A DNA stretch of 64,000 bases from Laetmonice hystrix (Eukaryota): positions 27,838,001-27,902,000 of the forward strand of contig OZ249438.1 of assembly GCA_965235115.1 (NCBI GenBank). Direction: 5' to 3'. The position numbers and the translations under genes were made by a program. Shown in pieces: positions 33,101 to 54,100 of the stretch (within the stretch, counting starts at the first letter, position 1; every line of letters starts with the position of its first letter). The notes beneath the pieces were generated by a model, which was not told the origin of the DNA, did no database searches, and worked only from the letters and a program-made list of their open reading frames with translations.

Positions 33101-36100
33101 TAAACTAAGCAACACTATAGCAGATAGCCAACCAGAACATAAAGGAATACCACCAACAAATCCAATCTTTCTCACCTCCACTTCCCTTCTACCTCTCCAG
33201 GTTTCAAGAATTTCTTGAATTCTGTAACTCTTTCAATGATCTCTCTCTAAAGAATACATAGAGGAGACATCCGGGCATGCTCCTCCTCCCGACCCCCCCC
33301 CCCCCCCCCACCAACCCCCAGAAAGATTGGTTTTGCTGATGTCCACACCAAAAGCATCCCTCACCAAATTCAACCATGCAGAATGATTGGTGACGAGTCC
33401 AACCATGCGAGACGACAAGGAGTTGCCGAACCATGCAAAAGAAACCACACCACATTTGAAACAAACAGAAACGATAACAAAAAATAAGCTCTCTATGCAG
33501 TAACAGCAGATTCAACATACTACAAATCAAATAAACATCATAATACTGGCAGTATTTTCACACGGCCGGAACACAAGTTTAATCTATCCGCAGCCATTTT
33601 CAAATAAATATTGGGACGCGGGATGGGTCCGGGGGGGGGGGGGGCGGTATAAACTGAAGGATAACCATGAACTATGTCTATAACTGAAATCAACACAACT
33701 CAGGTAGCAGGAGAGGAGGTCTGGGGAACCATGCTGTTAATATTGGCTTCCAGTCATGGGTCAGTTGAGACAGTTAATCGGGTGGGACGGTGGGAGTGGC
33801 AGTTGCCATGTGTTAAGGAGGATCCTGACAGGCGGACAGTACTGGTTTCGCTGCCAGTTGATGGTCACCCCATGCTGGGTCGTAACTCCAAGTGTATCGT
33901 TAGGTAAGCAGCTTCCTTTTAGTTGAAATGGATGAGAGTCACACCAAGGCATCATCTCACAGAACGTGCTGAGTGAATATAGAACCTTGTCAGTATCTGG
34001 TGTGGTGGTGTCTGCCTCCTCTGTGTATCTCCTGTCAATGGTCAAACACTGTGGCTCCCTCAACTCTCTCCTGGGGCCGTCAACGAGCTGGGTCCGTAAC
34101 TCCACGGGTGCCTGGCTGATGGCATCGGGTAGGGAGTCTATGACCAAGGGTTCCGGGACGTAGGTGACTACACTGGGAAGGACGACGGGCAGGGTGCTGT
34201 AAGGGGGCGGGTCCACTGCCTCTCTGGCCGGTACGGGATGCTGCTCACAACTCTCCGTGACTGGTTCTTTTGTCTGGACCAACCAAACCGAATCATGTTG
34301 GTCCTGTGTGGACCAATCCGATGCCGTGGGACTGAAGGGCCCTGAGGGGTCACCTTCCGAGCTCGTGGAAACAGACGGAAGGCCCTCTATGAACTTACGG
34401 AGTAGTGAGGGACTTGGACAGGGGCTGTGGAAGGTCTGGAGGATAGGCTGAGGGGCTGGGAGCGCACAGATCATCTCGGACGAGTCTGTGAAGTCGGCCT
34501 CGTACGCCTTGTCCTCCTGGCCCCGCGGTCCCCGCTGGAGCGGCCCCGGGCTGAGAGAGGATGAGGAGCCGTGGTCGTCCGAGTCTGGGCTGCTGGGGCT
34601 GACAGGTCGTGGGGTAACGTTAGAACCGCTCAGGTCCTGCTCTGGTTTGAGGTGTTGGTCGTGAGTCACCCTCCGGATAGGTCCAGGACTGAGGGACTTT
34701 GGAACCTCTAGGGTGATGACCTCTGTGGGTTCCTGAGGTCGCTTGATGTACCGTCTCCGGGGATGGTGACCGGGGACCTTGAGTCTGGTCCCGCTGGAGG
34801 AGGAAGTCCTCTTGGTTATAGAGACCTCCTTCTGACTGGTGTCACTGGAGGTAGTAGTGGTGTGGTGAACTCGAGTCCTGCCGGTCTCTGACATGTGAGA
34901 ACCCTCAGCCCGGTAACCTTCCCTCATGTACATGACCAATCTAGAGTCCTGAACCTTCCACTCCTCAGCCCGGGCGGCTAGTTCCTCCCGGGACAGCGTC
35001 CTCTCACCCTGGAATGTCACCTCCGATTCCTTCCTACGCTGGAGTAGTGGAGTCGACTGGGCACTGTGGGATTCCCTGTATATTCTCCTAGACTGTCCTA
35101 CAACACGCCGTGTCATTACGGGAGTTAGAAACGGAGGAATAGAAGGTCTGGCCGCGGGGGGTTGACTTCGGCTACACACTAATTCTGGTTCCGAGTCTGA
35201 GGACAGGAGGGTGTGACCAGCGGTAGGGTGTCGGCGGTGTCTGACCAGGGAAGGACTGAGATGGGCGATCAGTGACTGGGTCTCGTACATCTCCTCCCTG
35301 CTCCTCCCTGTGGTTACTGTCCTCTGGGTCCTCACTGACCGCTCCCGTGTCTCCGAGACCGATGTGTGAGTATCCTGGAGCCGTGGAGGCCGTGTCCGGG
35401 GACTGGACGGAGGCAGACTCCGGTGGGGGACCGTGGGGCTGTGGTGGGCTATAAATGTCTCACCAGATGTCGCTAGTCGACGGCTGACCATGGGACTTAT
35501 GGCACTGAGCATGGCGGGGGTTGAGGGCTGTGGAGGGACCACAGGGGGAAAAAGAGATAAATGATACACTTAGGATACCTCGCCGACACTACAGAAAAAA
35601 TGTGAAGTGTTCAAACATATCGTCATACTGGCATACTATCAAATAAACAGTTTTTTAAAGTCTACTATTCTGAACAAATTAATTACCGATAGATAAAATG
35701 ATAAACTGAACTTTGTATGATTTTGTGAGACATCACAACATTTGGCACTGGACAAGAAAGGCATGAGAAAGCTGAAATCAAAGCTGGGACAGCTAGTCAC
35801 ATTAGTGGATACAGATTACAATACGTGGAGCGTGTGGGATACAGAATAAATCTGTTAAACAGAAATAATTATAGCATGTGATACAGTGCTCTCTGAGGGA
35901 AAACACATTAAACTCATCATATCCTCTTCCGTTTCAGCTATTCTGTCGTGCTGGAGTGACACATTGACAATCTATGACAGCTTTTACGATACCACTAAAA
36001 ATTAAAATAATTTCTGGAAAATAAATCAAATTAATGGCAATAACGGCTGGTGGTAGAGGTCCTGGGTCAAGAGTGCTGTAAGGTAAGTACTGTCGTTCAT

Positions 36101-39100: not shown

Positions 39101-42100
39101 ATGTACATTTTAATGGTACCATATTAAAAGTAGCACGAGTCGAGGTTAGGCATATTTCCTTCCAGTATCGCCAACTGAAATGCAATGAGACACAATATGA
39201 AAGGTTCACGTCTTAAACTCAGACGTGGGTGACCCCTGGTGGTTCACATAGGTACCAATCATATCCTACAGGGGCGCCACCTGATGGCAACAATAAACGT
39301 TCCTCAAGTTCCGACAGTAAACTGAAGCCAACTTTTGTCTGACCCGCGTCTGGGTCTGAGACTAACCGGGTCCGTGTCCTATAGCAAGCAGAATGGAAGG
39401 TATCAAGCATTAGTAGCTGAAAGAAACATTGAGTTTTAGTTAGACGATTTGTTTACTCTGTTGTCCGTGTACTGACCTTCATGGCGCCTGATTCTGGCAT
39501 GTCGGGATCTGGGTAGGCCTTGATAAACTGTGCCACGTACGTCATCACCGACTTCTCGTCTGGTTTCTCTACGTCAACGTCTGCCAGTGCGGAGGGGGAG
39601 AAAATGAGAGTGTCAGACATTTTTACAATGGCTGTAAATCCCCCCCCCCCCCACCCCCTTCAATTTGATCAACCTCGACCAGTATGTGACACTAACATGG
39701 TGAATCAGTGATGTATAACCCATTCAGAACAAATTAATCCATTCCCAATCAACAACTCTATTATGATTGAACCATAATTCTTCACCTAGAAACAGACTCC
39801 ATGCAATTAAATATTATGTTGGCTTATTGATTGCCGGCGGCTGTAGATTGTATGATTTGGTCAGGGTATGGAGGTAGCTCACCTTCAGGATCGAGAAGTC
39901 TCGGTATCCCGAGCTGTGTCTCGGCGGTAGTGAAGGCATTCTCAAGGTTAACTCGGTTAGAATTATGTGGCAGTCTCTCCAAGTCCATCAACTCGGGCCG
40001 GATGTTGTTAATGATGGCACTAAACGCATGACCATCTCGCCAGCTTTTGCCGAAATCTGTCACTTCCACACCGAAACGTCTGACAAAAGGAGAGAGACAA
40101 GGAAATTAGCACCACAAATTAACAAAATAACCTATAACACTTCTTTTATTCAAAGACATCATACGCTGCATAAGCGTTCCATACCAAATTAAACAATGGG
40201 GCACATCAATCAATTTGCCTATTTTTGAGCTCAATCTAATTATTACAATCAAAACAAATGCCTGTTTACTATTGGCCGGTTGCAATATCTTTGTCTAACT
40301 TGACCGTGATATTTTCACGGCCTCAATTTTGTGTTACCTTTCATTAAGGTTCAAACTTTTCTTTACTAAGTGAGCAGTAACCAAAACCACGATTGAGTCC
40401 TAGACATAAGTTGAAAGGACGAGTTCCGAGCAGCAGTCTCACGGGAGTGGAATGTATTCGGTTCTCGCCAGTGCCAATTCCACAGCTACTCCTATCAATA
40501 TTTGATTACTGCAGCCCCGAGACATGTTGTTAAATTAAGACCAACTGTAAACAAAGGGCCGACCATTATACCCTGAGCTATGGCCAAAATAAAACACTCT
40601 AATTACTTGTCAGCCATCGTACCCTGAATGGGCGGCACAAGATTGGGACAATTTCTAAAGCTGACGTAAGAAAAGGTGAAGAAGGAGATCGAGGCAGAAT
40701 TACGCAGGGGTTCATGTGAGGAAGGAAACGAAAAACATACTTTCGAGCAAGCTATGATCAAAACCTCGAGACAACACTAGTATTGGCGAAAATCACATAT
40801 AACATATTCTATTTAAATTTAAGAAGTGGTATTAATTCTACTATCTGTTACGTTTATGAACGTAACATTATTGCCCCTCCACTCAAATATTTGATGCGCA
40901 TATCCATTGAAAGCTAGTCGTTTCTCCCCAGCAATATCGACACTAACTGCCGTGGAATGATCCAGAAGGTCTCTATATATGAACCTTGTCCTCAGTACTG
41001 GGTCAGACGAGTCAGGCAACAGGTTTCAACTTGTAACAAGAGCTCCCCTCCCTAGGCTAGTAAACTTGTCAGGAATCAATCTTAAGCGACTTTTCACACA
41101 CACTACTAACTACCTCCGGAGTTACTGAGAGAAACCTCTCCAATACCGCCGGCAAATATTTGCAATCCGTGCCGTGAATGAAGGAGCGCCCACACAAAAT
41201 ACGTACTAGTCTAGTACATAAGCTTTACTTTACACACTGTTCCTCGATTATACCCAAGTTACTGAGGCAAACACCTGTTTCAGGTGAATCTGTTAAAACA
41301 CAAATTTCTCCAGTTCGCTTATCCAATCTTTAACCACTGAATACCAAGATACTAAATACCAAGAGGTCTACCGAGGGGAGAGACCTTTAATTTTGGCTTG
41401 GCTACTCGGTACATAGTATACAATTCTTGCACCCTCCCAACTGAAATAAACTCAGGCTTGGCTACTCGGTACATAGTATACAATTCTTGCACCCTCCAAA
41501 CTGAAATAAACTCAAAATTAATTGTTTGGAAAGGTTTGGCGGAGGAGAGGAAGGTATGACGGGCTTACTGATAGATCATGTTTAGTAGGTCCTGCTTGGT
41601 TGGCTCTGTAGCCTTTGACACCTGGATGTCTGGGTGGTCCACTGGCTGCAATCCCGCCGCCAAGGGGCAGTCCGCCATTAGGCCGTCCACCAGGGGCGCT
41701 GGGGAGATAGGTTGGAAGGCCCCGGACCCATGTGGGTGGTAGGAGGCCGGGGTGGCGGTTCCCATTGGTCGTCTGACCATCATGACGTCATCACGGCTGG
41801 AAGGTAGCCGCCGCTGTCTGCGCGGGCTGCGGGCGCCCCCTACTGGTGTTCCTTGGCGGTCCTCCTTGTGATGTTTTGAGCCGGTTGTGACGTCCATGTC
41901 CACGTCACTGTCTGCGTCCACCTCCATACTGCTGTCATGGCGGCGGTATGATTCAGGAGATTGGACGTCACGGGGAGAGGGGGTCTTCCCTCGGCGGCTA
42001 CGGGAACTTGACGAAAAGCTCGTGTCGGCGTTGGGGTCAAGTTGTTTCCTCAGCTCCCTAACCTCATGGATCATGTACTTCAACATCTTTTTCTTGTCGG

Positions 42101-45100
42101 ATTTCTTGCCTTCCCGTGCGCTCCCAGGGCGGGAACCCGTACCGCTCCCATCATCCGGGTCGTGGGATCGTTTGGAGGCCCGGGAGGGGGAGGGGGAGGG
42201 GGTTCCCTCCCGGCCATGTGCAGGGCAGGAGACCACCACGGACGGTGGCGAGTCCCCCTGGCGGTCATCACGTGTACCACGCTGTCTCGTGTCCGGATGA
42301 CGTGGAGACCGGTAGCAGACGGGGAGGTCGCCAGGCGAGCGGCCACGTCTATCCCGATGTCTGATCTCCTCCTTCCTGCTCCAGTCGGTGGGGCACGGAG
42401 ACCGGCGGACGTCCACGCTACTCCTACTCCGAGGTACACTCACTGGTCCGCCATCGTCCCTGAATACATGCTCCGAGAACAGGCAGGCTGAGCTAGGTCT
42501 CTTCACACGTCTCTCCTTCCTCTCTCCCTTCCTCTCCCTCTCCTTCCCCTCTGGGTTCCTCTTTCTGGGCCGGGTCTCTCCTAACGCACTCTTTGGTCGC
42601 TTGGTTTTCACAGATTTCTCTGAGGATACGGGAGATGGTGGAAGGCGGGCCTCCTCAGCGTCTGAGGTAAGGGTTGACATGCTGTGAGCCTTAGCAGTCA
42701 TCAGAAGCGTCCAAGTCTGTGAGCCCAGAGATCGCGAAGATCTGCCCATCCCGTCTGGACTCAGGTCTGAGATCCCAAACTCAGGCTGAGACGACATGTT
42801 GGGGGCTATATGATGTCAACTATCACAGCTGTAGCAGTTTTATCACACAATTTTCTTATCACACGATTGAATTTTCTCAAACAAAATGTCATCACATGGA
42901 ACCACGCAAAAAATCTTGTAACATAATCTCAATTATATCCATCTGCAATAGGGTTGGATCACGCTTTCAACAGGCGAGGTGCAATAAAACCGTTCAAGAA
43001 AAGTATCTGATGAAAACAAGTATCTATCACAGTCTGATGAGATTTCCGTGGGTTGTGTTCATCAAGGTCACTGGAGCTGCAGCCATGCCCATGCCCATGC
43101 TCAGAGACCTCTACCGGTGAAACCTTACATCGCCGGTCAACTCATGCCGACCACCACAGTCAACCTCCACCGCTCACTGTCCTTGTCCATCAGACAGCTC
43201 TGTCTCATCCTCTATCTCAGCCGCTGACAGCTCTGTCTCATCCTCTACCTCAGCCGCTGACAGCTCTGTCTTATCCTCTACTTCAGCCGCTGACAGCTCT
43301 GTCTCATCCTCTACCTCAGCCGCTGACAGCTGTGTCTCATCCTCTACCTCAGCCGCTGACAGCTCTGTCTCATCCTCTACCTCAGCCGCTGACAGCTCTG
43401 TCTTATCCTCTACCTCAGCCGCTGACAGCTCTGTCTCATCCTCTACCTCAGCCGTTGACAGCTCTGTCTCATCCTCTACCTCAGCCGCTGACAGCTCTGT
43501 CTCATCCTCTACCTCAGCCGCTGACAGCTCTGTCTTATCCTCTACCTCAGCCGCTGACAGCTCTGTCTCATCCTCTACCTCAGCCGCAGCAGACAGTCAC
43601 ACGTCTCACACATAACTCGCAAAGTTTCCTTAACAGCTACAAAAACAGTTCTAGTCGGGTGAAATGTGCGCTGTGGACCAGAGACCGTGAGGGACCAACG
43701 TTCATTGAGGTGGCACTGGATCCAAGGCGGCATCAGGTCATGGGTCACGTGCTATATGTAGGTCAGGGTGCACGTGGTCATTTGACGTAGATCTGAGTCA
43801 GATTAACGTGAAGATTCCACTGTCGGCCGGGTGTCCACGGTAGATAATACCGTGGCACGAGTGTGATTTATAGTACTGACCCAAGTACAAGAGAATGTAA
43901 CCTCCCCCTTGTAGACAATGATTCCTGGACTCAGACTTATCTCTGTCCGCTCAGACCGAACCAAGCGTCCATGTCAACATTTCTTCTGGAGAAATAAACT
44001 GGACAGATCTAGCCGAGTTTCTTCAGCCAGGCCTGGGATCCTTTATAAACACTAACACGGTCACGAAGACCAGTCATTCCGAACTGAATGCCAAGTACCG
44101 AGCCTCCATACAGAGCTGGCCATCCACAGAGTCCATGTTATTTGCTTACAGAAGTCTGAGACCAGTTGTTGAGGCGTACATGGCAGGTATAACACCAGAT
44201 CCTACGACCCGATACTGTGACCAAGAGACGTGAGTGCCTGGCTGACCGGGAGGTCTACTGCTGCTGACATTGTTAGTGTTGGTCTAATCCAATGGCGCCA
44301 AGACTTGACTTGATCAAGTCTGAACAGGTGTTAACTTCCTACCGCCCATTACCATGTCGGTACCACCTCCCACCCTCTCCTCTCGGTCCTCGCTCAATCA
44401 ATGACCTCTGGGTCAGAATATAAAAACCTTTCCGTCCTCACGTTAAACCAGATGATCTAAGGATCGAGCCGGCAGGTTGGACTTGTAGATCAACTCGGAT
44501 CCACCGTCAGATCTGCCCGACTCTGGCCTCATTCCGGTGCCAACTTGTTACACAATCCTGAACCACTCAACAGACCAACTCAAGTCTTTCTCACTCCAAA
44601 GGCAGTGTGTTGACACAACACACCGAGTTTCACAACTTTCAAATCCTGTCGGTAGAATTTCTGCGGATTGATCAAGGACACCTGACGATCGCGTCTGTCT
44701 TGGAATCACTTTGAAGAGATTATTCATGATAACAGATTGAGAATTTCCAGATCAAACTCTAGTACTCCACTGATCTCTCTTCAGTACTACCTGAAGCATT
44801 CCTGTGTCCTTTGCTGTCCATTCTGAATCGGTTTGTTTGGAAAACAAAAGTTTAAAGTGAGGAAAACTAAAACGCTCAGATCTTACCTGGCGTTCGGTCC
44901 CCGACGTCAGCGTCTCTCATTATGAACGCCAGACGGTGACCACTCTCTTTTCATTTTAACACGAAAATCAATAACTAAAAACCGATAACTCAGTGTGTCC
45001 CTGCTCTGACTGGAAGCTCCTCATGTAATGAATGACCTGCCCCTCCCCCCCCCCCCCCACATGGTCTCCCCCCTACCCTCATTCGAGAAAAATCCAGATT

Positions 45101-48100
45101 TACTACGACGTACGTTACAATATATCATGATATAGAGACGGGAGATGACAAAGATGGTTTGGGAAGGATTGGTGTCCGGTACGAGGACAGAAGCTCTCAG
45201 TGAGATTATAACGGTTTGTAGAAGGTCTGATTGCCAGAGAGGCTTTCATATCCCTGGCCCAATGATATCAGGGATCCCGTGCCCTCTGACCTCTCGGGTC
45301 AATCCTGGCCTGCTCCCGTCCCCGCCTTGAGTATAAAATGATGGCACTGGTCGTAAACTACGGTACTGAACCAACATGGTACGCCTTTATCTTGGTCAAC
45401 TTTTTCTTCTGGTTTCTAATAAAAAAAAACATTTCACGCTCTCTAGCATTACTACCGCGTAACACGTGTTCATAAGGCATTACGACTCTAAGATAAGGAC
45501 AATAAACACGGTTCTTAAAGATATGTAGTTCCTTTTTATTTGGTAGGTAGAAATTCACGCGTGTTTTGCGAGTCCCCAGTCGTTCAATGTGGTTTTTATA
45601 GTGTTGTTCCGTGTGTGCAGTGTCTCCCCACGCTAAGGTAGGGGGCGCTGTAGTGCAATAAGAAGCGCCGGTAGCGCCACCTAGCGTCGGACGCTGCGTC
45701 ATGCCAGAAGACGCAGGTGGCGTGTTGGGGCATGATCCGGGCCCCAATCACACAATGCGAGACGAATTCAATTAACTCTAACAATAGATGGAGTTACAAC
45801 TGCCAATAAAAATCCCTACAAATACCGTCTGTACACTTGGTATAGGCAACAACTGCGTCGAAGTTAATCCATCCCTCAGTGAGCACTTATGGATTCAACA
45901 ACAAATCCAATTTGAGAGTTATTTTAATTCTGTCACTCACAGCTATAAATGGACGTCAAAACCACATATCAAAAAGAACGTCCTCATTATAAGATTTCCA
46001 CGGTCACGCCAAGCTGGCGAACTGGTTCTCCTGATCCCACTTCCAAGGGATCAGATCCAGCTGGCCAGTATCACATATACTTGCCATCGTGTTTGTGTCA
46101 ATCACGATTTTACTGTCGGAATGACTAATGTAGCATTAAGTAATTCTGATGTACAGACTTCCCTGGGTTGTTCCACTAAACACACATTCCATGTTCTTCT
46201 TGATATTCTTCGATAATGTACTGTTGATTTTTTAAGAATCATTTTTTCGAATATGCAGCTGAAATTGGCAAGATATTTGTTCTTGTTTTAAACCTTGTGA
46301 ATACTCGGCTACCTTGGAGACGTTCTAACTACTGATGGACGTAGGCTCAGTGGTCACCCCAGGCAGTTGTTTACCACAGTACAATAGAGTAGAGGCATGT
46401 TGTTCCAATACACCAATCAATAGTGACCTGGGGCGAGGGTTGGCGATTACGTCATAGCCACCATCGATAACCATGAACGCCCACGTAAATCTGGGGTTGG
46501 TTGGAGTGAAGGAGGAATGTCCTTACTGCAGGGCTTTCAATCTAATCCGGCAGCCGGTGGCTCCCCGTCTACAGGTACAACCTTCGCCAGCTACGTGAAC
46601 TCAGCTCACCAAACAAATTGACAGGTTTTTGCCATGATGCAAAAATCACAAGGTCATATGCTCAACATGGCATAAAATCTTGTTAGTAATTACTCAACAA
46701 AGTGATGGCGCCTGACTCTTTAGCCAAATCCCCGTCTAATCAAAAACAATTTAAAAGCCCTGTTAACTGAAACGTACCATTATATTAGAGTAACTTTTCA
46801 GAAGTGTGACTGACAAATATAGAAACTTAAATATAGTCTACAATGTCAATAATATTCTTCTATTTTGAATAAACGGCATGTCTAACTCTGCTGGTCACTT
46901 CATGTCGTTTATGTGGTCGTGGCTGACTGACCAACCACAGCAGGTCCGGCAATCTCTGCGCCAGTTGTCGCCTATTTACCTGGCAACCACCCCGGCCCGT
47001 GCTGGACGGGCGCTGGCAGCGAGCGGCTGGAGGCGGCGGGCTCTGCCGTCACTGAGGGCAGACGTCGGGAGTGGTGGGGGTGGGGGCGGGGTGGGGCCGC
47101 TACCTGCTCCCAAACAACCAATCAGCGCAACCAGCGGCTCAGTGATTAACAAACCCACATTCAGACTTGGCATTTACAGTTAGCGGCCTATGTCCGAGCT
47201 ATCACACCTCCGCCGGGGTTGCTACAGTATATCGTTGTCAACCGCGGTGTCAAGCGACTCCTCAGCCTTATAAACCGAGTGCTGTGTCTACCTGACAGCA
47301 GGAGATCACACGACCAGACCACTTCCCACGACTTCCAGCACGACTCCCACAATCAACCCGGGAACACGAGCAAACACAGGGTCACTCCTTCTGTCGTGGC
47401 TTTTGGTAAAAAACATTGAAAGTCGGAGATTTTGGATTCCATAGTGTTGTTCTGTACACACCGACTAACACCCGGTCAACATGAGTACCCAGGTGAGGAA
47501 AGTCGCCAAGACGAAGCGCCAGGCCCTGACAAAGCAAGCCGAGTTCCTGGTGAAGAAGTACCGCTTCCAGAAAGACGAAAACGAGAAACTTCTCAACCTG
47601 TTCAGTCGGGAAACCAAGGGTAAGAACAAGATGGACCGTAACACGTTCCGTAACGTGCTCCACAACTGTTTCGACATGACAGACGACATCATCATGGACC
47701 GTGTGTTCAAGGCGTTCGACAAGGACAACGACTCCCAGATCAGCGCCGAGGAGTGGATCCGCGGAATGTGTATCTTTCTGAGGGGGACGTTTGACGAGCG
47801 GATCACCTTCTGTTTCGACGTGTATGACATGAACAGTGACGGCTACATATCCCGGGAAGAGATGTTTCACCTGCTCAAACTGTGTATTATCAAACAGACC
47901 GGGGATGAGGACCCAGACGAGGGGATCAAGGAACTAGTTGAGATCGCGTTGAAGAAAGCTGACCAGGACCACGATAACCGAGTATCGTTCGCCGACTACC
48001 AGACCACGTGTCGTCAGGAATCTCTCCTCCTAGAGTTTCTCGGGCAGTGTCTGCCAACTGAAGTGAAGGTGGATGCCTTCGAGTGTCTGCTGAGAGGGGA

Positions 48101-51100
48101 CCCTGATGCCCTCTACCAGAGCGCCAGGCAGGACTGTGAGCAACAGAGCCCCGAGACGGACTGATCAGGGCATTATTTGTGAACATCTTCCTACAAATAG
48201 GTTATCATTTGTGTACTGTATACGGAAGCTGGAAATACAGAAACGTTACATGTATTTTATTGAGATTGATTCTTACACATACTATATGCTTATAATAAAT
48301 GTCTGGACCGTGACATGTGGTTGTACCATTGAACTTGTGGATATTTGTGATCATTCCTGGAATGTATGCCAACAATCGCCAAATTTACGAAATCAAGCCA
48401 GCGTTGTACCAGCTACCAAGGGCGTGTCTATCTATAGGAACATAAGGTAATATAACGGTGAACCTTGCTAAAACACTGCTGATCTATCCCTTAGCCCCCA
48501 CTCCACAGTGGACAAACATGGAATGTTATTCCAGTCATTATCAATCCATCTCTGATGATTATCTATGATAAATATTTGATATCAACTTTGTTCGGTTTAT
48601 CTAAGCTCAGCAAATCTGAGCTCCTTTCCCGTTGCTACGTACACGGACATGTAGAGGTGCACAATAACAAGGTTTCTACAACCAACAATTCCAAGGCAAT
48701 CATCGGCTTATCTTGCCATTAACATTTTTTCCTGGTCAATCCGTTTAGTATGCTCCTTAACCCGGTGTGTGTAGGTCATACCATCAGACAAGACTTACAC
48801 CAGATATTTGCAGAAAAAAAGTGGTAAAATGTCAGTTTTAAGTTATGTACGGATATATCATTTATAAATAAATTGAGATGGCTAATATATGAACCTATCA
48901 TTTCGATGTTGTTTTATATTTGATATTTACCCAGTTAGACCCCACAGGTAATCTACTGTAATATCGCTATCGCTTACAAAGATTTACCGGTACTTGTTTC
49001 TTGGATAACGCCCCCCCCCCCCCCCCAATATGTATCACATATTGTAACTTGAGCTTCGTCTAATTTGAAGTTTTACTCGAAAGTCACGGGTTAAAGGGGT
49101 AATCGCTTTCTGTCTTATCATCACTGGCGAAATTTCCTTGAATTCGAAAAAGAAACAAGACTGATAAATTTGTCTTGAATTTCTCATGGACCCCCATCTG
49201 ACCGAATGCACTCTGTGGCACTGTGGACACAATGTGGCAGGTTTGCCGACTCTAATTTGGCTGCCGTTTGTTCGTCGGTTACCGAGACTAATCCACCATA
49301 ACAAAAAGTCAATCCTGACTGAGTTTGAAGGTGACAAACTTGGCGGCCAGTACTTGACATACGTTTGGAGGCTGTGGCTGAGACGCTGAGTCCATACCGA
49401 CTGTCGAGAACCATTATATACGACCGGCAAACCACCACTTGGTGGCGCTGTTACTCTAAGTACTAGTTTTACTGTGTTCTCCGGCCAACTTAAAAAAACA
49501 ACTTCTTAAAGGGGAACGGTAGGACCTACTGACCGTTCGAGGGTAATAAACCACTGTCGAAGGGCCAGCCCGCTGAGAGAGGGCTCATTACAAACTTATT
49601 ATGCTCCTCCTACTGAATGATGCGTTAGATCACATGACCACGTACTGGTAAATTCAAACTGGCAAACACACAGACCGGGAATCTGAACATAGATTTTCTG
49701 TCAAATATTTCAGAAAAATTAAAGGTTGATTTTTATGTCAAGTGCATATTCTTGGTCCCTGTATCTTCTTCATTTAATAGAACAGTTTTGAAGTGTATCT
49801 ATGTTCTGTTTCTGGTTATTTCGAAAACATCTGAAAAAAAGGGGTGGAGACCTGTCCCATTTCAAATCTGTTGGGCTACTGGGGCAGGTGTATGTTGGTC
49901 CGAAATCCTGTCTCTGTCCATCCTAAGATACATCACAGGTGTCATAAAATCTCATCAAGTTACGAAACCAGCATGGTAATCAGGAACCCTACTGCCTTAC
50001 AACAAATCTAATTACTCGACTACTTTCTCCACTGGGTACGGTCTGGTCTGGTACGATCAGTTAGACCGCCTCAGTATGAACCAATGGTCAGTTGGCGGCC
50101 GTGCCGCATACAGAGTACCGGTGGGGTAGTGCCTGTGATGGTCGGTTGGCGGCCGTGCCGCATACAGAGTACCGGTGGGGTAGTGCCTGTGATGGTCGGT
50201 TGGCGGTCGTGCCGGATACAGAGTACCGGTGGGGTAGTGCCTGTGATGGTCAGTTGGCGGCCGTGCCGCATACAGAGTACCGGTGGGGTAGTGCCTGTGA
50301 TGGTCGGTTGGCGGCCGTGCCGGATACAGAGTACCGGTGGGGTAGTGCCTGTGATGGTCGGTTGGCGGCCGTACCGCATACAGATTACCGGTGGGGTAGT
50401 GCCTGTGATGGTCGGTTGGCGGCCGTGCCGGATACAGAGTACCGGTGGGGTAGTGCCTGTGATGGTCGGTTGGCGGCCGTGCCGGATACAGAGTACCGGT
50501 GGGGTAGTGCCTGTGATGGTCGGTTGGCGTGGTTAGAGACACGGCCGGCTTCGTGCCAAATCGGTCCTCCAGGAGCTTCTCCTACTCTCGTCCCCTCAAT
50601 TCTTAATGACGGAGAGCCCCCCCCCCCCCCGCCCCCTCCTCCTGCCCCGGCCTACATGAACCTTTGCCAGCCTCACGTGTTCTTACGGCAGCAGGAGGAC
50701 TCTGAGGTCTGCAGCAACACACCCACCGCCTGACAAATGTCCTAATTCATCCAATAAAAGTCTACAGCTCCCACAAATTATAAACTGGGGGTTTGGATGC
50801 GCCCTGGAAGTTCTAGGTTTTTACATCAGTGGCAGATACCATAGAAAATGTTGTACTGTCCAGAACTACATCTGACAACAGTGACACACGCTCTGTCCCA
50901 GACATGTCGCCCACACTGCTGCAGGAGGTACTACATTAGTAATAAATGCTTTACCCGTGCTGTGTGACGGAAGTCCTCTATATCTCACTCCGTACGTACT
51001 CTGCCTGTTAATAACAGGACCAATGTATCTAAGTTCTATAATATAAAGTCCCAATCATTCTGATCTCACACGAGTCGTATCTCAGAGTCCTGCATGATTC

Positions 51101-54100
51101 AAATCATGAGCTCAACCTTCCAATATATGGAGAGACGTGAGTGTTGGGACTCAATTCATCCTTTATTATGCCCCTCTAAGCTTTTTATGGTTCACTTCTT
51201 GCTATGTTTTTTTTTCACAGCATACTCGGTAAATCATATGATTAGACTAGAGAAACTCATCCTTCAGTAGTATCTTGAAGGACGACTATAGACAGGATGT
51301 CCTTACTTACCAAGTTTGGATTTAAACTCTATTCTAAGGAACACACCTGGACTAACTCCATTAAGAAATATTTTAATACTTATTCTTGCCAGGCTATGAA
51401 TCCGCGACACTAGATATCCCCCCCCCCCCCCGGGATAGAGATTAGAGGTTGTACTCACTTGGTGACTGCCTTCTGGACCCACATGAGCATGGCCTTCTTA
51501 GCGCCTCCCTTGAACTTCTCCAGGGCGCCTGACCTGGAGCGTTTGGCCGCTGAGCTCTCCTCCGTGGGGGACTGTGCCATCTGTGCCATCATACGTGTGT
51601 TCTCCTCAATCTGAAGATAAACCCAACCCCACAATGATGTAATCTTACCCTGTACATAATTCTGAGGTAATAAAGCAGGTACATGCGAGGACATTCGCTG
51701 TTGGCAGTTTAAACCATTACATTGGAGATTTGAAATCTCAACCTTTGGACCTTAAACATGTGCCTTTCTCTCACATACCGCTACTTCACAATTCCAGCCC
51801 AATCAGTGGTCTGTAAAAGGTGGTTAAGAATTAGATTGAGAAATATGTACAACTAAATTCCAGATTTCTAAGAAACCCAAACCAGTCACACCGGACAAAC
51901 TGATGGCAACAAAGCTGACTGAACTCCTGGTTCAGCTGAACAGCTGACAGAAAAAGACCAGCCTCATCCAGGCTCTGCTTTTTCTTCATTAGCCACACTG
52001 CAGATCTGTGTACATGTTGCATTGGATTGTCAATGCCAGCAAAAAGGCTGAGGTACTGCGCACTATTTGTTGTTTGAAACCACCACAAGAAGCTCTGTCA
52101 GTAGATATGGAAGTCGAAGATTACAAAGTTTCACTGCAGCATGCTCCGCTGTAAGCGTGTAAGCAATGGGGCGGCCCCCTTTGACGGGTCTTTAAACATC
52201 GACGTAATAGCTGCAGGCAAGACATTTTCTATCTTTATAATCAACTAATGAGGGAACTCGGCTTGATTAAAGATTTTCAATAAATTAGCCCTTTTAAGTG
52301 TCCATCAAAGTATATACATCTCTAAGAGTCTCCCTCTTTTGGCTTTCATTTATTTTACTTCTTTTTAGTTATGAAAATATGTCATCCCTGCCATGAGCAG
52401 GAACAGAGATGAAATATTACGAGAAAAATAATCAGGTTGAGTGGCGGTTCAAACAGTATATCTATGGTATCTTAGTATCAGAGTACCATAGATACTCTAC
52501 GGGATCTTATTACAAGGATATCACACGCCTATGGTGACATTCATGGCCATAGTGCTGAGTCTTACTGGCTTATGCCTGGCTAAGGCCACCACAACGGGTT
52601 GGGAGGCCTCCCCCAGCAACGTCGATAAGTACGAAGTCTCTATCTGTCAGAGGTAAAGTTTCAATCAAACAAAAATACATTAATCGTGGGGGTTAACACA
52701 GGGTTACGATTGCTATTGTTACTGCTGCAAAAACGGAGACGAAAAATACATCAATCAAAGCGGATCACAGACACAGTGCCATTATATTAAAGTTCTAGTG
52801 CTCGTGAATGTTTGTGCCGACAGCTGACAGCTGTGCTTGAACGTACAGCTCATCCAAAAAACAAACTTTTTGAGAACTTTTAATATTTTCCGATTTAACT
52901 GAAAACATTTGGTAGAAATCACAGATTCTCATAAGAAAATCTTTTCTATCCTTGATACATGAGTGGTTTCACTTTCTGTGATTTGCACGAGACTCTTTGA
53001 GAAACAGGAACGTAAACATGAGTTTGATGAAGCAGTTTGAATGACAAACCTCCTTGCTTTATTTAGATCTACCGGTGTATATAATTCATCAGCTTTCCCG
53101 TCTCCCCTGGAATTTCTCCAATATTGTTTGTCTATAACATGTGCCTCAGTACCCGTGAAGGATCAAACTTACTCGAGTGAGAGCCCCCCCTCATGAATAT
53201 TTAACTGATACGTTTTCTCAACGACAGGCACGATACGTTAGCGTCATAATACCTGTGCCCCAATCCTTACACTTCATCATTCCCCAAGGATTTACACCAC
53301 TGAATGTTACAACTACCAACTTCAAACATTTGGACCAGAACCCACAGCTTTAGATAAGATCTTCAAAATATTACAATGCCACAACACAACTCCAAGGAAA
53401 TCCCACCTTTTTTTAAGAGGATTTATAAAATTATCAGCCAAATAAACGATTCGCCCAATTCGATAATGAACACATCAAACTCCAAATAAAGGTTAGTTTT
53501 CAACCACAACCATGAACTCTCTCTCAGCGAGATACCTCGACACTATCCTGTTCCCCTGACTGACACCGACTTAGGGAGTCGTTCAGGGAAAACCCCTTGG
53601 GGAGCCGCAGCACTGCTGCCACCTGGTGAACAAAGTGGGCACTAATGTCAATTTGTTTGACTGTCTATCAAAATCTTTATAACAGTGAAAGACAGCTGTC
53701 ACCTAATACCATGGCAGCTAATACCATGAGGTCACGCTGTTTATGAAGCCTACTAAACCTATTTATCCTACCATAATATTAAGTCTTTTCCTAAGGGGGT
53801 TGAACACCCCCCCCCCCCCCCAACATCCTGATAAAGAGGTGACTGACCTGGAAGTAGAGGATGATTGTCCAGATGAGTCCGAGGACGATTGAAGGTTTGC
53901 CATCCACCACATCTGACGGGTTGATGTTCACCAGTTTAATCTGTAACCGTATCATATCATAGCTACAGCACACTGGCAGGACAAAATAGACTTGGGGAAA
54001 TAAACAAATTAGGGAAAACCAAATATTCGTCTATGAAAGTCCACAATTCGGGAAGAAAAGGCCCCGACTAAACGTAGGAACCTCTCTCACAGGACTTTTA

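Follow-up and report, generated by a model that had tools for sequence, protein, structure and literature searches.

A 64,000-nt stretch of Laetmonice hystrix DNA (GenBank assembly GCA_965235115.1, contig OZ249438.1, positions 27,838,001 to 27,902,000), referred to below as the window, carries on its minus strand part of a giant gene that is assigned to the nesprin-1/2 type by its predicted domains. The intron that splits the second CH domain (CH2) of this gene contains an open reading frame (ORF) of 410 residues. According to the comparison with homologous loci, the ORF is probably a conserved alternative first coding exon of the host gene, and we assign to this reading a probability of about 0.7. 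An alternative N-terminus that would remove CH1 and join CH2 in frame is well supported by the sequence comparisons described here.

Host gene and position of the exon

The host is a giant gene of the nesprin-1/2 type, as judged from a tandem CH1-CH2 pair together with nesprin-type spectrin repeats. The CH1 exons are located near 57.2 kb (VQKKTFTNWIN), 55.8 kb and 53.9 kb, and they are followed by three CH2 exons, termed CH2a, CH2b and CH2c (Table 1). The Pfam CH family was matched by CH2b with E 1.2e-12 and by the last CH1 exon with E 1.3e-04. Minus-strand exons between 4.7 and 16.4 kb gave scores of 60.2 and 41 bits for PF25034 Spectrin_SYNE1 (cut-off 35) and of 66 bits for PF00435 Spectrin. 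The window does not reach the 3' end of the host gene, where a KASH region would be located. For naming of the paralogue, a 345-residue spectrin-repeat exon was used as the query; three matches were obtained, none of them named, and the cluster look-up gave no names either. The CH exons are presumably nesprin-1-like with respect to human, which is taken as a lead and is not used as support.

The minus-strand ORF extends over 41565..42797 and starts with ATG. Its TAA stop overlaps the donor CA/GTAAGC (the slash marks the boundary between exon and intron), so that the predicted exon has 1229 nt and ends in phase 2. The canonical CH2a exon has the donor AA/GTGAGT in the same phase, and the CH2b exon begins with one base that completes the split codon. 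The alternative join reads ...KQDLLNMIYQ-RFGVEVTDFGKSW, and the frame is open across CH2b and CH2c. The ORF had been described preliminarily as a 1229-nt frame inside the CH2-splitting intron that joins CH2 through TKQDLLNMIYQ; its size, position and start codon were matched to the base, and the join reads in the way claimed. As the TAA is located within the donor, an unspliced RNA would terminate there. The G+C content of the alternative exon is 60.5%, versus 46% in the window. The encoded head is basic (net +21), rich in Ser, Arg and Pro, and mostly disordered.

Table 1. Features of the alternative exon and of the neighbouring CH2 exons (window coordinates; a slash marks a splice boundary)
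Feature	Position (strand)	Description
Alternative first coding exon	41569..42797 (-)	ATG at 42797-42795; 409 full codons and two bases
Donor GTAAG	41564..41568 (-)	Phase 2; in-frame TAA at 41567-41565 inside the donor
CH2a exon, canonical	51459..51610 (-)	CH1-CH2 linker and CH2 helix A, ...GGAKKAMLMWVQKAVTK; would be replaced by the alternative exon
CH2b exon	39883..40079 (-)	Common to the canonical and alternative forms; acceptor TTTTGTCAG/A, donor AAG/GTGAGC; Pfam CH
CH2c exon	39477..39580 (-)	DVDVEKPDEKSVMTYVAQFIKAYPD..., end of CH2; spliced frame open through CH2c
Invariant block	42033..42095 (-)	KKxMLKYMIHEVRELR[KR]QLDP, about 20 residues (residues 235-255); from alignment A2 and the model
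Exon C-terminal helix	41569..41597 (-)	KQDLLNMIYQ, residues 401-410; would stand in for CH2 helix A
Upstream region	42798..43110 (-)	Four sense TGTGATA and a GCATG block of about 40 nt; candidate promoter or 5' untranslated region

Conservation of the exon, its position and its boundaries

A search of 1.84 billion cluster representatives retrieved four homologous ORFs with E values from 5e-33 to 3e-05. A search with the motif region added two homologues (P0007 and P0008), resulting in six other lineages in total. In a profile search of a word-indexed protein collection, low-complexity words dominated and only known matches were returned. The homologues have 262-586 residues and are 27-46% identical to the window ORF. 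According to the seven-sequence alignment (A2), they have in common the start MxS.PE, the invariant block, F.PISPAP and a helix-like tail, and RP[KR]SA is kept in four of the seven sequences. In the adjacent CH2b exon, identity among these loci is 66-80%, whereas the head is only 27-46% identical to that of the window. Thus, the head evolves fast outside the conserved islands. Loss or frameshift of the ORF in related species, named earlier as one part of a refuting observation, was not encountered among the six other lineages, in all of which the homologous ORF is open.

DNA is available for six lineages (the window, L002, L003, L006, L008 and L011), and the L006 sequence ends before CH2b. In L002, the last CH1 exon, CH2a, an antisense calaxin-like gene, the ORF homologue, CH2b, CH2c and a 503-residue exon are arranged in an order identical to that of the window. 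In L011, the order is the last CH1 exon, CH2a (...KKTLLGWAQKAVTK), the ORF homologue and CH2b. The homologue is thus demonstrably located between CH2a and CH2b in two other lineages. In L003 and L008, the ORF homologue is followed by the CH2b and CH2c exons. Wherever flanking sequence is available, the ORF lies on the nesprin strand and precedes CH2b by 0.8-5.9 kb.

The end of the ORF is conserved in a specific way. In all six lineages, the last coding base is a G that directly precedes the TAA stop; this gives a GTAA donor after two coding bases, with GTAAG in three lineages, GTAAA in two and GTAAT in one. The final codons vary among the lineages (CAG, AAG, GAG and ACG), which indicates that the retained G and TAA are not the simple inheritance of one sequence. 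If, for a free-standing gene, G before the stop and TAA are given chances of 0.3 and 0.28 per lineage, the probability that five further lineages have both is about 4e-6 as a rough estimate. On the other side of the intron, the CH2b exon begins with a single codon-completing base in the window and at four further loci (L002, L003, L008 and L011).

The start of the ORF is conserved as well. An A is present at -3 of the ATG in six of six lineages, and a G at +4 in five of six. An in-frame stop is located seven codons upstream of the window ATG, and stops are found 3-14 codons upstream in all six lineages. These stops indicate that the ATG is a translation start and does not lie in an internal cassette. 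An internal cassette exon continuing from CH2a was considered as a candidate and was excluded, as a stop in the same frame closely precedes the ATG in each lineage. The conserved start and splice signals provide the strongest argument that the ORF is a first exon. The preliminary description had proposed a product without CH1. The proposal agrees with the loci compared here, in which the ORF appears as a conserved coding exon within the CH2-splitting intron, with its own ATG and with the phase kept in each of the six lineages represented by DNA.

Features of the encoded head

A model was calculated with AlphaFold2 on the seven-sequence alignment. The mean predicted local distance difference test score (pLDDT) is 48.5, and the head is modelled as disordered except for two helices. 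The first helix consists of residues 233-253 and contains the invariant block (pLDDT about 94). The second helix consists of residues 401-409 at the exon tail (pLDDT about 90).

According to the model, the invariant block would form an amphipathic helix. The block is most likely a partner-binding or docking site for a conserved partner. A short coiled coil had been pointed out in the head, and the same segment turned out to be the sole invariant block of the exon. The invariant motif string was not found in the literature text searched. The basic clusters KRPK, RKR and KKK had been read as nuclear localization signals. This reading receives no comparative support; the clusters are not positionally conserved, except for RP[KR]SA in four sequences.

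The tail of the exon is located just before the predicted junction. Counted from the junction, positions -7 and -3 are hydrophobic in seven of seven tails, and position -6 in six of seven. The window sequence KQDLLNMIYQ aligns with KKAMLMWVQK of the canonical helix A. On the basis of the model, it is plausible that the exon tail substitutes for CH2 helix A.

Within-species variation

Sequencing runs X1-X3 are genomic DNA, with introns covered continuously at 30-50x, and variants were called from contigs. About 1% of sites in these runs deviate from the reference. Among the exon variants listed from runs X1-X4, 16 were classified (four more are unlisted), and nine are synonymous and seven non-synonymous. 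The synonymous share expected from the codon content is 24% (about 4 versus 12), giving P = 0.006, or P = 0.026 when the expected share is set to 30%. Both variants falling in the invariant block are synonymous. A 3-nt insertion at 41608 in contigs of run X3 is the sole indel of the exon; it preserves the reading frame and changes SKATEP to SKAITEP 13 codons before the exon end. The indels in the neighbouring 1.5-kb intron are 2, 12, 1, 3 and 1 nt in length.

Differences between closely similar contigs were also synonymous, in three of three cases between L008 and L009 and in two of two between L003 and L004. These contigs were picked by exact protein identity, and the comparison is therefore biased and has little weight.

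Points that weaken the first-exon reading

Several results weigh against the assignment of the ORF as a first exon of the nesprin gene. The donor of the alternative exon is good but deviates from the full consensus, with A instead of G at -1 and C at +6. It had been presented as a consensus GTAAG donor in phase 2; the phase agrees with that of CH2b, whereas the claim of a consensus holds for the GTAAG itself and not for the flanking positions. The variant density of the exon (about 1.3%) is not below that of the adjacent intron, which indicates that constraint is weak outside the conserved islands. The tail helix is located four residues nearer to the junction than the canonical helix A, and the conserved core Trp is not kept. 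According to this shift and the lost Trp, the chimeric CH2 may not fold as a normal CH domain. The description of the tail as a mimic of the helix that it replaces is thus correct for the modelled helix and the helix-A-like hydrophobic pattern, and not for the position and the core Trp.

Concerning transcripts and proteins, run searches were performed with the ORF and, as a control, with a constitutive spectrin-repeat exon. Both led to one study only, and no RNA run is on record for the organism. No splice joints were observed in X1-X3, which are genomic DNA. Among the 1.84 billion cluster representatives, no protein crosses the junction and only stand-alone ORF calls are present; this collection seems poor in annotated vertebrate proteins. 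Run X4 (58 Mb of contigs) gave one 151-nt contig on 42594-42744. This contig is not counted as expression.

Alternative explanations

The exon may be spliced to CH2b in a short isoform. The transcript would then have an early 3' end, as in human p56CH-Nesp1, and would encode a small protein of head and CH2 with no KASH domain, in place of a giant isoform at the nuclear envelope. This is a sub-case of the first-exon reading and overlaps its probability; taken by itself, it is possible, and we would not expect it to be the case. In human, many short variants of nesprin-1 and nesprin-2 result from combined alternative starts and ends, and CH-only variants are among them (PMC3388047). No result obtained here connects the exon with the 3' part of the gene, and no direct counter-evidence was obtained.

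Alternatively, the ORF may represent an independent gene with a single exon that is free-standing and nested within the host intron. Such a gene would encode a disordered protein of 262-586 residues that ends at the TAA, and the GTAA would be incidental. Every homologue is recorded as a stand-alone ORF ending at TAA, but these calls were made by gene-prediction programs that take no account of introns. Another nested single-exon gene, which is calaxin-like, is already present in this intron, and no junction-crossing protein was found among the cluster representatives and no such read in the DNA runs. However, six of six lineages keep G and TAA as GTAA in the sole phase that fits the next exon, and a free-standing gene has no reason to do so. 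In addition, the ORF is always found on the nesprin strand and precedes CH2b by 0.8-5.9 kb, and its tail resembles the helix that the alternative exon would replace. We consider a nested gene to be improbable. A mixed case is possible, in which the spliced RNA would give the nesprin isoform and the unspliced RNA the head alone.

The ORF was also compared with expectations for a chance frame, a relic of a repeat or transposon, or a decaying pseudo-exon in a G+C-rich, T-poor sequence. The T content of 16% makes stops rare. First-order Markov simulations of matching T-poor composition gave a mean of 163 residues and a maximum of 409 residues; one of 2000 simulated sequences was open over 409 residues, and none of 2000 was open for 410. 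Openness alone is worth about 1 in 2000. The remaining five frames over the alternative exon contain 8-20 stops. Neither the ORF nor any of the seven sequences has a Pfam match, the PDB profile search gave no match, and the feature search of the ESM Atlas gave no usable match; this lack of matches would also be expected of an artefact. The alternative exon was searched for in the 627-Mb genome with a protein query and with the seven-sequence profile, and it is single-copy. An origin from a transposon or repeat, tried as a candidate, was ruled out by this single copy. In seven lineages, an open ORF is present in syntenic position, with 27-46% identity and a block of 20 residues that is invariant; the within-species variants show a synonymous excess, and the start and donor contexts are conserved; an artefact of this kind is effectively refuted already by the homologues, the synteny, the invariant block and the variant pattern, and its probability is negligible.

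Proposed isoform and comparison with known isoforms

According to the first-exon reading, a transcript would start upstream of 42797 and would be translated from the ATG at 42797. Splicing would join 41569 to CH2b at 40079, and the nesprin frame would follow. The product would have neither CH1, nor the CH1-CH2 linker, nor the native CH2 helix A, and would carry a basic disordered head of about 400 residues instead. The last 9-10 residues of the head would form a short amphipathic helix placed to stand in for helix A. The invariant helix KKxMLKYMIHEVRELRKQLDP would most likely act as a docking site for a conserved partner. By analogy with MACF1a3 and the CH2-only BPAG1 isoforms, actin binding would be weak and the N-terminus might be redirected to another partner. 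We infer splicing, expression, the extent of the isoform, the fold of the chimeric CH2 and the presence of a partner from the sequences and the model. Purely by inference, the head might anchor nuclei to something other than actin, as had been suggested in the preliminary description.

The closest precedents are MACF1a3 (ACF7 isoform 3) and the CH2-only isoforms of BPAG1/dystonin. In these isoforms of giant linkers of the spectrin superfamily, an alternative start is located within the region coding for the actin-binding domain, and the N-terminus of the product consists of CH2 only with an isoform-specific head (PMC3352950, PMC5979291). The CH2-only isoforms bind F-actin more weakly than CH1 and CH2 together, and their purpose is still open (PMC3352950, PMC5979291). 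The exon described here resembles them in its position downstream of the CH1 exons and in having its own ATG. It differs in three respects. The host is of nesprin type rather than a spectraplakin. At 262-586 residues, the head greatly exceeds those of the precedents in length, and no similarity to a described head was detected. The predicted splice is located within CH2 and would remove helix A, which is apparently replaced by the exon's own helix.

The first exons of plectin (1, 1a, 1b, 1c, 1d, 1f and others) encode short isoform-specific heads that retarget the giant cytolinker. The analogy with plectin and dystonin that had been drawn for the present exon holds, with the MACF1a3 and BPAG1 isoforms as the nearer cases. 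Unlike the exon described here, the plectin first exons join upstream of CH1 and the full actin-binding domain is kept; here CH1 would be lost.

Within the nesprin family, alternative ends on the 5' and 3' sides give rise to many isoforms of human nesprin-1 and nesprin-2 (PMC3388047; Duong et al., 2014, PMC3981789), and the present case would follow a similar principle. In the passages and the part of Table 1 of the human catalogue that were covered here, none of the 5' untranslated regions given for nesprin-1 begins before intron 14/15, and the variants with CH domains described there start at the most upstream site (Rajgor et al., 2012, PMC3388047). These passages contain no human nesprin variant with a start among the CH exons, nor one in which CH1 alone is missing. 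In a survey of isoforms in fly, start sites are located at exons 1, 3, 18 and 21, and the isoforms are grouped by the presence or absence of CH domains (PMC8616381).

In models of giant nesprins, the far end is assumed to bind actin via CH1-CH2. In excerpts of published work on nesprins, deletion of the CH domains is described as having mild effects in mouse, fly and worm. If the first-exon reading is correct, nesprin rods would gain a second N-terminal specificity through a CH1-less, promoter-driven isoform, and the invariant block would provide a concrete bait of 20 residues for finding the partner. A splice inside a CH domain may be tolerable if the incoming exon supplies its own helix A. 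The exon would also be an instructive case for annotation, as a 1.2-kb coding first exon that is undetectable through known domains.

A broader proposal regards the exon as the source of an ancient N-terminal module of giant nesprins that has so far gone undescribed. In this proposal, the invariant helix would dock a conserved partner other than actin and the module would form a second N-terminal end of the nuclear-envelope tether, under its own promoter with a conserved TGTGATA cluster and head-to-head with the calaxin-like gene. We put it forward tentatively, and the odds are against the proposal as a whole. Isoform models in RefSeq or Ensembl may already contain the alternative exon, which limits the claim of novelty.

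Upstream region

Sense copies of TGTGATA are located 29, 49, 65 and 233 nt before the window ATG. Within 500 nt upstream of the ATG (in the window, 42798-43297 on the minus strand), the window, L002, L003, L006, L008 and L011 have 4, 4, 1, 2, 2 and 5 sense copies among them, as counted over the six lineages. The total is 18 versus 0.39 expected, and none is antisense (P about 4e-24). In these upstream segments, TGTGATA is often found in the context CTGTGATA(A/G), which overlaps WGATAR.

At 43071-43109 on the minus strand, about 275 nt before the ATG, a conserved block, GGTCTCTGAGCATGGGCATGGGCATGGCTGCAGCTCCAG, spans about 40 nt and contains GCATG three times. Its counterpart in L002 is 87% identical and is found at a similar distance from the ATG. 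These upstream features point to a dedicated regulatory region, presumably a promoter or a 5' untranslated region. They fit an autonomous first exon and are not proof of a transcription start. A second, near-identical copy of the block is present at G000:C3:27806131-27806162 on the plus strand (L013), about 32 kb before the window start and on the opposite strand. This second copy lies inside or near the same gene.

Neighbouring features

A calaxin/EFCAB1-like EF-hand gene is located at 47481-48164 on the plus strand. It is a single-exon ORF of 227 residues that matches Pfam EF-hand and, with E 9e-63, the calaxin of PDB entry 7rro. The gene lies within the CH2-splitting intron, is encoded by the strand opposite to nesprin, and points away from the alternative exon in a head-to-head arrangement with 4.7 kb between the two ATGs. 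In L002, the arrangement is kept, with a calaxin-like ORF of 226 residues at 4.4 kb from the ATG. It is possible that the calaxin-like gene and the alternative exon have a shared or bidirectional regulatory region.

The CH2-splitting intron also contains repeats. A 60-nt unit is tandemly duplicated (98% identical) at 41395-41514, which is 50-170 nt past the donor in the intron before CH2b. Two tandem arrays are located at 43193-43587 (33 nt x 12) and 50084-50529 (54 nt x 8.3), each with 96% matching. Both arrays produce long spurious ORFs in several frames.

Downstream of CH2, an open exon of 602 residues is located at 33761-35569 on the minus strand. It is rich in Ser, Pro and Thr, disordered, and has no Pfam match. 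The homologous exon in L002 has 503 residues, and the corresponding open exons have 1589 residues in L011 and more than 900 in L003. The host nesprin thus contains a large disordered insert between the actin-binding domain and the spectrin rod.

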